From positions 21,266,001 to 21,330,000 of the forward strand of contig NC_087247.1 of the NCBI RefSeq assembly GCF_037042905.1: a stretch of DNA of 64,000 bases, in the 5' to 3' direction. Of this stretch, positions 1 to 58,010 are shown piece by piece. The DNA comes from Lytechinus pictus (taxonomy: Eukaryota). Position numbers and translations under genes: made by a program. The notes beneath the pieces are model-generated. The model ran no database searches. It saw only the letters and a program-made list of their open reading frames with translations, and was not told the DNA's origin. Position 1 is the stretch's first letter. Each line of letters opens with the position of its first letter.

Positions 1-3000
1 TAGCAGCGATCAAGCCATCATCGGTGACGCCTGGTATGGTGTGAGTAGGAAAGATTATTTTCACTATACTGCAATGAAGTATCGTGATAACTAGATAAAC
101 TATTGAAGAAGGTAGAAGCACCCATGTGGGCGATGATAAAAGTTATCATACTTTTCACGATGATGTTACTAATTACTTTGGAAAGTAGATAAAATCTATG
201 TCATCGAACCATTTTTGTTAATTCTTTAAAAAGAAACACATACCATCGCCCAAAAACATAAGTTCAGAGATGTTACACAGTATGTTGTGCGATTGATTTT
301 CAAATAACTTCTCTCTAAAAATCATCATTACTATTTATTGAGTTTGAACTCTCAATCACTTCTGCAGTTGTGTGTGTTTGTCAATGACCTCTTAGTTTCA
401 AAGCTTTAATCATTGCAGCCACAACCACGTAAATGTGAGGAAGAAAAATGCGTTGTACAGTATACTAACGCATTAAAAAGCATGAGAATTATTTCCTCAA
501 CTTTGCTGAGATGGCTACATCTAAATTGCATTGTAAATGATCATTTGCCCCACCAAAAACAGCGATGATTTTGCTATGAAGAAGGGGGAAAAGGAGAAAG
601 AAAAACTATAATTAGAAGAAGCAGAAGAAGAAAATCAATAAGTGATATGGTAAGTGATGAAATCTACAAATCGCACAGATATGTCCCGTCCCTCCCGAAA
701 TTATTAACAAGATAAATGAGTTAATGCATACATACATAATCTCAAGGATTGATACATGAATGGTAATTGTTATATAAATAAATAACGTTCAAAATTCTAT
801 TGAAAATATCCCCTCACCATAGGGAGCCATTATTGCTCTGATTATTTCATCCAGGCCCGTGATATTAACTTCTGGTCTAGGTAGATCAAGATTATCTGTA
901 GGAAAGAGGGTTATCAGGAAGAGAGTTCCTTCATCTCTGTTGACACCAGTTAGTACAGGACATCTCTTGAAGTCATTATTCTTGTAAAGATTGGCTGGTT
1001 TGTCGTCAAGGAAGTTACCATCCACGGAAAGGGGGCAAAAAGCATAAGCCTGCAAAATAAGATCGCAAGGTACACGTTTGGGGAGTAATATCGATAAATT
1101 GAGTCGTACTGGTGTTCCCTATAAGTTATACATATTACGATTTTTTTTTACCTTAAATGAAACACTGGTAGCATCTTTTAGGTTGAAATATTGCATCCTA
1201 AGTGGAAAAATGTGCAAAGATCCGCCTTTTCATTGTATTTCATTGGCACCCAGAAATGCGTGTTTGCACCCTGAAAGGTACATCTTTCCAGCTGGATGAA
1301 TGATATTTTACGTTTAAAAGGGTTCAAATATCATGAATTCTAATCTTCATTTAATCGTTCATCTCGACAACCTTTAGAGTGCTTGATATAGCCCAATATG
1401 ATAAATATGTTCAATTGCTCTTAGTACTCCCTGGCTGCTGCTATGGTACCAACTCCTAGCGTTCAAATTTAAACCTCTATTACTTAATAGTGTGAGTGGT
1501 AGTGAATGCATTACGCCCAAATAGTTCTTGAACCCAAGGCATTATTTAAACATCATGCTTTTAAAGAGTATTATTTCTGAACATGCTAAAGGTGCTTTAT
1601 CCGTAATCGTGGGTTGTGACATGTCTGAGAAAAAAAATAGGTGTTCAATTACCACATTCTTTAAATGCTTCTGTGACGTGCTGATTATAATTTTGTAAGG
1701 AGATCAAACAAAAATATTTTGGGGGTAGATACATTTTGTTAATCGGAATTACTGGGCAAATTGCGCGTCCAACTGTAATGATGTTACTGACTTATTTTTT
1801 TACATCAAAATCAATTTAGCTTATTTCGGTATTATACTTTCAAGTAATATCGAATGTGTACACACGGGTAAAGAAACGTTGAGAATATCATCAGGAGTCT
1901 TAGTTTCCAAACATGCGATCAATGCTGAAGACGGCGACGTGTCACAACCCAAGGCCTCTCCCAGATTCCTGGCATCTTGTACTTCCATCTCCGCTGGTCT
2001 GGGATCAAAGGACCAGTCAGGAGCTGTAGATCCACTCTGAAACAAAATCGAAGTTCATGGTATTAATGAACAAACATAAATATTGCAAAAGAAAATTCTG
2101 ATATAAACTATTATGTTCATATTATCCCCTATAACCATTACATTTGTTACCTGAACAAAGGTACCATTGATACGTAATTCTAAAGACAATCCTTGTATAC
2201 CTCTTTTGAGATAATCAACGCATATCCATGTATTTCCATTAAACTCTATATATTATTTTATCTAAGTTAATTGTATCAAATGGGCATTTTGCGTAGGTTT
2301 TATCACTTCAATATCATTATTTTTTCGCATGATTGCTTCATAATTTTGATGTAAATGATGGAGAAAATACACTTCAATAAATGAAGAGCAAATCGTCCTT
2401 AGTGACTGCACTTTGAGTGCTGATTTTCTAGTTCAAATTTGAAAGACTAAATCAGCATTCAGAGTGCAGTCACTATATACACGGCTAAATTAGCTCTTCA
2501 TGTTTTTAGAGTGTGATAAAGAACATGGGGCGGGATTCAAAACAGAATATTTTATCGTCAAGGTGACATGCAAAGTAAGGTTTTTGTAAATTTACTCATC
2601 ATTTTTTCAATATCTAAAGTAGAAATGAAAGGAATTCTATGAGGCGTAAGTAGTGTTTTTTTTTTGGTCTATTCATTTATTTGTTCAGTCAAATCCGTTA
2701 CGGCAATTGAATTGATATTACCTGAATGATGGCTTGGGTAAATAAATGACGGCTTCGTTTAGACAATGTGAGGTAATCTACTGACGCTCCACCGGCACTC
2801 TCTCCAAATATAGTAATCTTGGCTTTGTTACCTCCAAAAGCTATTTTGAAATTGGTGGTAAGAGCATTTTCATGATTGATTGATTAATAAATGATTTATT
2901 TCATTTCAAGTTCAACAACAAATTACAAAATAAGGCAGTATATAATATAATACAACATAATGGACTGAAATGGAACATCCTGGGAAAGGAGGTTCCACTG

Positions 3001-55800: not shown

Positions 55801-58010
55801 TGTCGTCCGAGATAAGAAATTCTGTATTCAGATTATACCTGTTGACAACTGTGCAAAGATCGCTAAGCGGTAGTTGAAGGTTACTATTATGACGTCGCCA
55901 ACAGCTACTAATGGAGGTCCGTAGTAATCATATGTCATTGAGGTCCCCGTTGAAAAAGCACCTCCATGAATCCATACCATGACAGGTATCCCTGTTGATG
56001 GCTACATGAAAAAAAAAGTTGTCTCAATCATCTTTCTTCTTTCAGACATGTAATAATTGTTTTGCATCAATTAATTAACCCATATGGTAGTGGCATTAAC
56101 CAATTTTCTACAGGATTCAAAGTAATGGTCAATGCAGGAAGGCCATTAAAATCACAGGTTTTAGTAGTCAATGGGCTAGTTGGACTCTACATTATGCTTA
56201 CTGCCAGTATATCAAAAGACCATTCGAATCGAATTCAGGATCTATTTCAAGATACGATGGTGAGTGGTTATAAGAGTCAATTCTAAAGAATATGCGGAAC
56301 AGCCAAATAAAGATCAAATTAAAAAAATAATAAATTTAATCAGAACCGAAGTGATCCCTATACGGTCTGGGATCGCTTTCGTTGGTGTGATATATTGTTC
56401 TTAATACCCAAAGTCCTAAATCTGCACTGTTCGTCAATTAGGGACCAAGGAACAGCAGGTCTGAGTGGGCTTGCCCCCATGCTTTTTAGTATACAAGTAC
56501 AAAAAAACGTCATTTAAATCTTAAAGTGATTTTTTTTTACATGGTCACCACCCTTCCCCCTCCCCATGATCAAAGCTGTTCTGTGGTCCCTGTCAATTGC
56601 TAATTCATTCATCAGTTCCAAAGTATGACATGATTTACATGATTTAGGTGTTATCTATGCAAAAATAGTGGCCTAATAAGGATAAGAATGGGGCCTTATA
56701 TCGTTGTCATCCAAATATGGAATAGTCACTCTTGCCAATGTATGAGTCACTTGTGTCTGTACAAATAAAAATAGAAAATAGGGCCTAATAAGGACATTTT
56801 TTCAATCAAATACCTTTGGACTTGGTGTGTAAACATTTAGATAGAGGCAATCTTCTGACATGACGGGATAGAATAAAGGCTGAGGTACTTGTTGGCATGC
56901 AGGTGTAAACTCAGTGGCATTCCGTTCTCCTTCCCATCGTGTCATCGGGTCAGCTCGGGCGAACCGCGTTGGAGGACTAGCGAAGGGAACGCCCTAATCA
57001 TCAGCAAAATAATGATAGTTTTATTTTATCTCCCATGTCATATGCATGTGATGTGTCATAAAAAATATAGTTTGTCGCTACAAGTCTGAAATGTGTGAAA
57101 AAATAATAGTTGGTTTCGAGCTCATATATAGTTCAAGTCTGTGAGATATGATACACTAAGTTTTCCACAACTTAAAACCCGACAAAAGTCAATAATGTGC
57201 GCACAAGCAATTTAAGAAATGAATTCCTGCCAGGTACCCAGTAACCTATCCTGGGTTGAGTGTGGCAAAGTTATTGGTGTCTAGTAACACGACATGTTAG
57301 CGCCAGCACGACATTCATACCTGAGCAATCAGTATTTTGAGCTACACCAATCCACTTGATGCCACCACCTCTACAAAAGTCAAGTGAGAATGGATGTGTA
57401 TATAATCAGGTCACTGTTCCAGTCGTTATATTTCATTGAACCAAACAAAGCAATATAACATATAATTTTTAACTTTTCTCAAGCACAAAAACAATTAAAC
57501 AATATAACCAAATAACAATAGAGATCTACATAAAACACGAAAGGTGGAAACTATACTAAAATGTTCATGAAATTTACATATTCAGCAGTTCCAATTATGA
57601 AAACAACATGGCATGGGTGTATGGTGTAAACCTTATCAATTTTGAATTAGCTAATCAACACATAAACAAGCGTAATTCGTACAGATGTAAAGAAGGGTTG
57701 AAAGTTGAATTGATTTTAAAATAAAAACATTAATTTCAATATTAAGCAGTAATCTCATTTATGATCAATAGTCCCAAACTAAAACATCGGTAAATCATGA
57801 ATCTAAAAGAAAATTAAACACTGTTTATTCAACATTTTTACGACTTACAAGAAACATGTCGACATCTTTGGTTAGATTGATGTACTGGTTCTCAGTGAAC
57901 TGCACTGTCTTTCCCACAAGAATTCCCTCTGTCACTTCCACACGAGGACTTTCCCCCGATACACAAACAGTGACAACAAAAAACATCAAAATCTTAGAAA
58001 CTCGCATCAT
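49819..58010 (-). CDS. Carboxyl/cholinesterase-family paralogue E, 10 coding exons: 58010-57849, 56993-56814, 56001-55839, 55147-55070, 52930-52812, 52343-52170, 51676-51234, 50804-50610, 50426-50245, 49934-49819
   Basis: Signal peptide [19 protein letters not shown]; [24 protein letters not shown]. Last exon [41 protein letters not shown]. Confidence 0.95.
53204..54094. mobile_element. Non-autonomous TIR element of about 890 bp, Harbinger-like ends
   Basis: GGTTTTCCACTAGGGC at the left and GCCCTAGTGGAAAACC at the right; many internal GGACA/TGTCC motifs; TSD not clear. Confidence 0.8.
54294..54875. mobile_element. Full-length Kolobok/T2-like MITE with TTAA TSD
   Basis: TTAA-AGGGATGGTCCGGGCTGAAA ... 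TTTCAGCCCGGACCATCCCT-TTAA; TIRs of about 180 bp; near-identical to the pieces at 4592-5953. Confidence 0.93.

Follow-up and report, generated by a model that had tools for sequence, protein, structure and literature searches.

The esterase gene cluster

The stretch analysed here, called the window, is 64,000 nucleotides of the RefSeq genome of the sea urchin Lytechinus pictus (C3:21266001-21330000; 812-Mb assembly), with a G+C content of 36%; contig C3 is of chromosome scale. The window carries five tandem COesterase genes, copies A to E, all on the minus strand, with 10-11 exons each and with intact reading frames in the spliced models. Copies B to E lie wholly inside the window and encode 600-608 amino acid residues; copy A, also intact, extends about 3.2 kb beyond the window start. 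The products have the catalytic core of the cholinesterases (ChEs) and end in a T-peptide of the acetylcholinesterase (AChE) type, and they lack the tryptophan, Trp84, that marks the choline-binding site. We think it probable, though well short of certain, that they are secreted serine carboxylesterases of an echinoderm-wide family that is related to the ChEs but distinct from them.

Genome searches place the five genes in a cluster of at least 11 genes spanning C3:21.087-21.324 Mb, and find further family copies on C3, C5, C10, and C14. Upstream of the window, C3:21087890-21262841 contains at least six more family copies, one on the plus strand, and three of these have T-exon matches above the Pfam cut-off.

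The gene models rest on stop-to-stop frames and GT-AG sites, guided by templates from echinoderm proteins with semi-global scoring. Junctions C 8-9 and E 9-10 were set by hand, and the last-exon junction of copy B was set to the RefSeq model. Nearly all the splice sites chosen in the five models are well-formed GT-AG sites. The models are as follows.

Copy A, in-window part, 1..7571, minus strand: exons 7571-7407, 6457-6281, 4315-4156, 3778-3701, 2840-2722, 2036-1878, 1049-818, 30-1
Copy B, 10177..20454, minus strand, 11 exons: 20454 or 20418-20251, 18422-18240, 17567-17408, 16625-16548, 15986-15868, 14451-14281, 13382-13142, 12356-12149, 12007-11819, 10729-10548, 10304-10180, then the stop codon
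Copy C, 24219..30652, minus strand, 10 exons: 30652-30482, 29870-29691, 28468-28309, 28009-27932, 27746-27628, 27317-27144, 26818-26376, 25589-25395, 24846-24665, 24334-24222, then the stop codon; 605 residues
Copy D, 35450..46507, minus strand, 10 exons: 46507-46346, 42392-42216, 41517-41358, 40560-40483, 39913-39795, 39516-39346, 38859-38417, 37613-37419, 36978-36797, 35565-35453, then the stop codon; 600 residues
Copy E, 49819..58010, minus strand, 10 exons: 58010-57849, 56993-56814, 56001-55839, 55147-55070, 52930-52812, 52343-52170, 51676-51234, 50804-50610, 50426-50245, 49934-49822, then the stop codon; 603 residues

In full, the template-guided splice model of copy A has 11 exons and 588 residues and reaches about position -3159 outside the window; the exon with its catalytic His (AGHGEE) and its tail exon lie at -946 to -3159. 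The copy A protein is 93.5% identical to L. variegatus P0180. Copy B has 608 residues, or 604 if translation begins at the second Met, the start codon being uncertain. With the RefSeq last-exon junction, it matches XP_054751989.2 (P0176) exactly over the C-terminal 300 residues; an earlier model of copy B was 99.3% identical to the same entry overall. The spliced model of copy C is identical to RefSeq XP_063952692.1 (P0386), and its AlphaFold2 (AF2) model has a mean predicted local distance difference test score (pLDDT) of 94. Copy D is 82% identical to the S. purpuratus "cholinesterase 1" P0153, with which it groups in the tree described below. In copies A and B, the counterpart of the large exon 7 of C, D, and E is divided by an extra phase 1 intron, which lies between 818 and 30 in A and between 13142 and 12356 in B. 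Each of the five copies has a predicted signal peptide; transmembrane segments and additional domains are absent.

Repeated DNA is also present at the locus. A tandem array of about 29 copies of a 26-bp unit, with 70% matches, occupies 59605-60363 of the window, just upstream of copy E. Intron 2 of copy A holds two instances of an element of about 210 nucleotides (5320-5531 and 5866-6077), and a related piece lies in intron 4 of copy E (54788-54928); the element is probably a dispersed repeat. An intron of the nearest family copy upstream of the window contains a reverse-transcriptase-like open reading frame (L033:292-1149).

The catalytic core

The Pfam profile PF00135 (COesterase) matches the copies exon by exon, with E-values from 1e-8 to 1e-18. 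By residue table and motif check, none of the five copies lacks Ser200, Glu327, or His440 (Torpedo numbering). The oxyanion-hole residues Gly118, Gly119, and Ala201 are kept as well, except that copy E has Ala at 119 and so reads GGA for GGG. The copies thus combine the profile match, the triad in its GESAG, DEG, and GH contexts, an oxyanion hole of GGG(A) plus Ala, and the conserved cysteines, which together characterise the type-B carboxylesterases. An initial annotation of the stretch, made by reading the letters alone, had listed GESAG and GxNxDEG in all five copies and AGHAED or AGHGED in B to E. All of these were located on the minus strand, as follows.

GESAG starts, minus strand: A 2791, B 15937, C 27697, D 39864, E 52881
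Catalytic His motif, minus strand: B 11950, C 25523, D 37547, E 50738
Copy C, 27697..27711, minus strand: GESAG nucleophile elbow with Ser211
Copy C, 26693-26713, minus strand: GFNRDEG with Glu335
Copy C, 25523-25540, minus strand: AGHAED with His461

The catalytic His had been credited to B to E, which is correct; copy A is not short of it, its AGHGEE exon lying just outside the window. Likewise, the three cysteine pairs described for B to E are there, and copy A has them too. The motif FxCP given for the third pair does not hold for copy E, which has YACP in its place. Among 54 homologues, S211 and H461 (copy C numbering) are invariant and E335 is nearly so.

The S. purpuratus orthologue of copy C, P0168, keeps Ser200 and His440 and has Gly at the positions of Glu199 and Trp233 and Asn at that of Gly119. 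It may be a functionally diverged orthologue.

The COesterase fold has often been recruited for binding, and the copies might be non-catalytic adhesion or scaffold proteins like neuroligin, glutactin, or the ChEL domain of thyroglobulin. The loop-bearing exon does score best against neuroligins in the PDB. We consider this very improbable, given that the triad, the oxyanion hole, and GESAG are kept in the five copies and across the clade to which they belong, that the products are without a transmembrane segment or extra domain, and that strong purifying selection covers the catalytic motifs.

The first disulfide loop and the gorge

The loop closed by the first cysteine pair is encoded at the following positions.

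First disulfide loop, minus strand: A 6314-6361, B 18273-18326, C 29724-29774, D 42249-42296, E 56847-56897

The initial annotation gave this loop 14-16 residues and no Trp, and our counts agree: there are 14 residues between the first two cysteines in A, 16 in B, 15 in C, 14 in D, and 15 in E, and none of them is Trp. It had set against this the Torpedo AChE loop of 26 residues with Trp84. Chain 6euc_A bears this out, with 26 intervening residues and a Trp at +17, which is Trp84. In the HMMER alignment, the copy C loop shows a net deletion of 11 residues relative to that of Torpedo AChE.

The changes extend beyond the loop. In the residue table, the segments carrying Tyr70/Asp72, Trp279, and Phe288/Phe290 (Torpedo numbering) are deleted in the array copies, and the positions of Phe330, Phe331, and Tyr334 are mostly aliphatic. 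The reference list of 14 gorge aromatics was taken from PMC3045457, and the number kept by each protein is as follows.

Gorge aromatics kept, out of 14: copy C, 3; copies B, D, and E, 5 each; copy A, 6; the AChE of L. pictus itself, 12; mammalian butyrylcholinesterase (BChE), 8

The features of a true ChE, Trp84 in a 26-residue loop and a gorge lined with aromatics, are therefore not those of the array copies.

Short first loops are widespread. The loop has 15 residues in a fish bile-salt-activated lipase and 18-19 in insect and mollusc esterases, and it has 26-28 in the carboxylesterases of the CES group. A census of the 31 COesterase loop exons retrieved from the L. pictus genome found 30 with 11-21 residues and a single one with 26 and the motif EMWNPN. 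Since short loops are common in COesterases that are not ChEs, and 30 of the 31 loops in this genome are of that kind, there is no special loss in this array.

An aromatic residue occurs in the loop stretch 7-11 residues ahead of the second Cys in 65% of 140 short-loop relatives, and in three holothurian members the residue is Trp. The loops of these three, P0207, P0208, and P0216, are 18 residues long and place F-W-F some nine residues ahead of the second Cys, so a Trp near the Trp84 position is possible within the short-loop family.

The genome's own cholinesterases

The L. pictus genome has two canonical, Trp84-bearing ChE genes (C16:1597428 and C16:29391979). Both are on contig C16, not in the array, and this sets the array copies apart from the genome's cholinesterases. 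The first, at C16:1597428-1604938, is an AChE whose coding sequence is spread over four exons, beginning with one of 451 codons; it has the complete Trp84-bearing omega loop and includes a T exon. It is the source of the sole 26-residue EMWNPN loop in the census. Annotated as "cholinesterase 2-like", it has an exon 100% identical to XP_054771712, matches solved AChE structures with an E-value of 4.6e-137, and gives the best T-exon match in the genome. The second Trp84-type gene spans C16:29391979-29396801.

The T-peptide tail

The last exon of each of the five copies encodes a T-peptide (WAT) of the AChE type, a feature overlooked in the initial annotation. The exon of copy A lies beyond the window; the others are as follows.

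WAT exons, minus strand: B 10180-10304, C 24222-24334, D 35453-35565, E 49822-49934

The pattern W-x6-W-x6-W-x3-F/Y-x2-Y-x5-C, in which the three Trp are a heptad apart and a Cys stands close to the C-terminus, is found by regular expression in copies A to D and by eye in copy E; it is that of an amphiphilic helix. Scores against the Pfam profile PF08674 fall below its 25-bit cut-off, at 24.3 bits for copy C (E-value 2.6e-5), 18.4 for B, and 17.7 for E; several relatives carry a precomputed match to PF08674. The alignment of the copy C tail with the Torpedo T peptide is gap-free, and the tail forms a helix at residues 572-599 in the AF2 model. In a set of 54 sequences, made up of family members and true ChEs, conservation is 90% or higher at W577, W584, W591, and Y598.

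The intron preceding the T exon is in phase 1 and lies two codons ahead of an I-D motif; its position and phase match those in the genome's own AChE. The same is true of the phase 2 intron at FAKxG^DP. The matching positions and phases argue for one of two origins of the 3′ end of these genes, either descent from a shared ancestor or transfer as an exon of compatible phase. All five echinoderm classes have clade members with the WAT tail; it is not found in the two members of the hemichordate sister clade that were inspected.

Phylogeny, age, and selection

In the tree, the true ChEs form one clade with support of 100/99. The window copies fall in a separate ambulacrarian ChE-like clade, with support of 100/98, which divides into hemichordates on one side and echinoderms, with all five classes represented, on the other. 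The order of the ChEs, the array clade, the vertebrate CES proteins, and the insect esterases is weakly supported (49/14), and forcing the ChEs and the array clade together costs 0.23 log-likelihood units, with a p of 0.43 in the approximately unbiased (AU) test. The initial view that these proteins are not true cholinesterases is consistent with the separate clade, with the retention of 3-6 of the 14 gorge aromatics, and with the location of the canonical ChE genes on C16.

In the tree, each of copies A, C, and D has an S. purpuratus protein as its partner, so the duplications are older than the split between Lytechinus and Strongylocentrotus; the division of A/B from C/D/E is older than Diadema. 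In pairwise comparisons of C, D, and E, the nonsynonymous divergence (dN) is 0.13-0.19, the synonymous divergence (dS) is saturated at 1.8-2.3, and omega is about 0.06-0.10. The locus is an array, as first described, and the notion of a recent expansion is not upheld, the duplicates predating the Lytechinus–Strongylocentrotus split and dS being saturated.

The omega values point to strong purifying selection on the copies, the catalytic motifs included. Together with the intact triad and oxyanion hole they favour the initial judgement that the enzymes are catalytically competent, which we likewise expect from their sequences. A further suggestion, that the loop has diversified between copies, is weakly supported: the loop is indeed somewhat more variable, with 38-62% identity against 71-78% overall, a comparison that involves 13 loop columns.

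Expression

In eight transcriptome-sized run assemblies, from two studies, the recovery of words sampled across the copy C locus is 21-31%, close to the exon share of that stretch, about 28%. A run contig of 2.6 kb, of the RNA type, carries an intron-free coding sequence for a holothurian family member. For copy C and its near twin, the public contig collection, from which the window's own genome is possibly left out, gave no exact-product record.

That last result, with the indirect nature of the expression support, is what can be said for the copies being decaying or silent duplicates, whether pseudogenes or annotation artefacts. We find this scarcely credible. The five frames are intact over 10-11 exons with good GT-AG sites at nearly every junction, omega is 0.06-0.10, orthologues of A, C, and D have been retained in S. 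purpuratus, and RefSeq models match. The run assemblies, moreover, contain an exon-sized share of the locus, and the 2.6-kb family contig is intron-free.

A literature search on tissue expression in sea urchins yielded a single lead, and it comes from a sea cucumber. In Apostichopus japonicus, a "cholinesterase 1" transcript is among the ten most depleted in regenerating intestine, alongside those for amylase, pancreatic lipase, lysozyme, and phospholipase (PMC3735544). From this one transcriptome lead, our leading guess is that the array esterases might have a digestive role.

Substrates and assembly

We propose that the copies act as secreted carboxylesterases with an active site that is predicted to be wider and less aromatic than the ChE gorge. 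Since a site of this kind is expected to accept neutral or bulky esters, the enzymes would hydrolyse neutral or bulkier carboxylic esters, whether dietary, lipid, or xenobiotic, and would not hydrolyse acetylcholine with the efficiency of a ChE. With its near-terminal Cys, the tail would link the subunits through disulfides into dimers and tetramers, perhaps around a proline-rich partner.

Several points weigh against this proposal. HMMER aligns Tyr98 in the loop of copy C to Trp84, and MAFFT puts a gap there. The initial annotation had named another aromatic at the Trp84 position as a finding that would speak against it, and the two alignments answer differently. A Tyr or Phe lies 7-11 residues ahead of the second loop Cys in all five copies, and, judging from sequence, the loop aromatic may allow some cation-π binding of choline esters. 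The hint of expression for these copies consists of word shares in runs, not of reads across junctions, and the A. japonicus transcript is linked to the array family by name alone. We know of no enzymology for any member of the family. As for a partner of the tail, a genome search for PRiMA (PF16101) returned sub-threshold, low-complexity matches only, and ColQ was not searched for.

The alternative to which some of these points lead is that the copies are atypical but genuine choline-ester hydrolases, of the pseudo- or propionyl-cholinesterase kind, in which the loop Tyr or Phe stands in for Trp84. Some of the cholinesterase activity that has been measured in sea-urchin tissues and is not due to AChE would then be theirs. 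The top sequence matches among solved structures are all AChEs or BChEs (E-value 7e-94), the T-peptide is retained, intron positions are common to the array genes and true AChE, and the sister relation to the true ChEs is not rejected by the AU test. The HMMER placement of Tyr at Trp84 and the Trp in the 18-residue loop of some holothurian members also fit. We nevertheless regard this alternative as unlikely. The copies keep only 3-6 of 14 gorge aromatics, with mostly aliphatic residues for Phe330, Phe331, and Tyr334; the deletion removes Asp72 and Tyr70, and the acyl loop is shortened. The loop aromatic itself is present in just 65% of the 140 short-loop relatives, and the genome already has two canonical ChE genes.

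If the copies are indeed non-cholinergic carboxylesterases, it is tempting to propose that the T-peptide is a module for assembly and anchoring in general, one that is not peculiar to cholinergic enzymes and has been kept on non-cholinergic esterases in all five echinoderm classes. We put this forward tentatively, as a possible but doubtful extension. If true, it implies a proline-rich partner yet to be found, or self-tetramerisation. Diverse, possibly digestive, hydrolases would then be held as tethered oligomers, and mixed tetramers of the clustered paralogues would be possible. Assays of recombinant enzymes would be informative on the function of the array esterases.

The family also bears on how such genes are named. 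It had been anticipated that annotation pipelines would label the copies as cholinesterases, and the RefSeq name is "cholinesterase 1-like". Automatic names of this kind, such as "cholinesterase 1-like" and "acetylcholinesterase-like", mislead. This matters to ecotoxicology, where sea-urchin "cholinesterase" activity is used as a biomarker, and to counts of echinoderm cholinergic genes, given that L. pictus has two canonical Trp84 ChE genes and about 30 ChE-like loci. The family is, in addition, a natural experiment in ChE evolution, in which the catalytic core and the tail were kept in five echinoderm classes and the choline-binding gorge was dismantled or never built.

Comparison with known esterases

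The array copies resemble true AChE and BChE in the COesterase fold (Foldseek template modelling (TM) score 0.87), the triad, the oxyanion hole, the three cysteine pairs, and the positions of both the WAT exon behind its phase 1 intron and the phase 2 intron at FAKxG^DP. The fold itself does not discriminate, as AChE, BChE, and CES1 all score TM 0.86-0.89 against the AF2 model of copy C in Foldseek. The array copies differ in their loop of 14-16 residues as opposed to 26, in the absence of Trp84, Tyr70, and Asp72, and in the deletion of the Trp279 and Phe288/290 segments. Moreover, the two groups form separate clades (100/98 for the array and 100/99 for the ChEs), with 3-6 of the 14 gorge aromatics in the former. 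The region that is a single exon of 451 codons in the true AChE is divided among 7-8 exons in the array copies.

Bile-salt-activated lipase (CEL) is likewise a secreted COesterase, and its first loop has 15 residues in Liparis P0237. CEL also has a GGA oxyanion motif, as does copy E, and its digestive setting in vertebrates has a parallel in the one suggested for an echinoderm "cholinesterase 1" by the sea-cucumber lead. In contrast to the array copies, CEL is without a WAT tail, and the top PDB sequence matches of copy C are ChEs, not CEL. An assignment of the array to CEL was considered and rejected: the Liparis enzyme falls outside the ambulacrarian clade, and loop length is the only trait shared. 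The vertebrate liver and intestinal enzymes CES1, CES2, and CES5A are, like our favoured reading of the array copies, non-cholinergic type-B carboxylesterases without Trp84, and human CES1 has a TM score of 0.86. Their first loop, however, has 26-28 residues, they have no WAT tail, and their deep relation to the array clade has support of 49/14.

The closest counterparts are the proteins named "cholinesterase 1" or "cholinesterase 1-like" in the echinoderm entries of RefSeq, from S. purpuratus, L. variegatus, Diadema, sea stars, sea cucumbers, crinoids, and brittle stars, which belong to the same family as the array and show no essential difference from it. Copies B and C are themselves the L. 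pictus "cholinesterase 1-like" entries. A survey that covered the family in S. purpuratus and in further invertebrate deuterostomes reportedly found a blurred boundary between ChEs and carboxylesterases in sea urchins, and reportedly described ChE-type oligomerisation domains on carboxylesterase-like proteins. The family is already annotated and has reportedly been described, and the present work is consolidation rather than discovery. For L. pictus, the additions are the exon-intron structures of the genes, a map of the cluster, a census of loops across the genome, and the common intron phases. The survey in question, Johnson & Moore 2012 (PMID 22210164), stands in the reference list of PMC6490906. 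The array copies have what defines the echinoderm "cholinesterase 1" clade, namely their grouping in the tree, the short loop, and the WAT tail, and the last two are common to every echinoderm member of the clade that was inspected.

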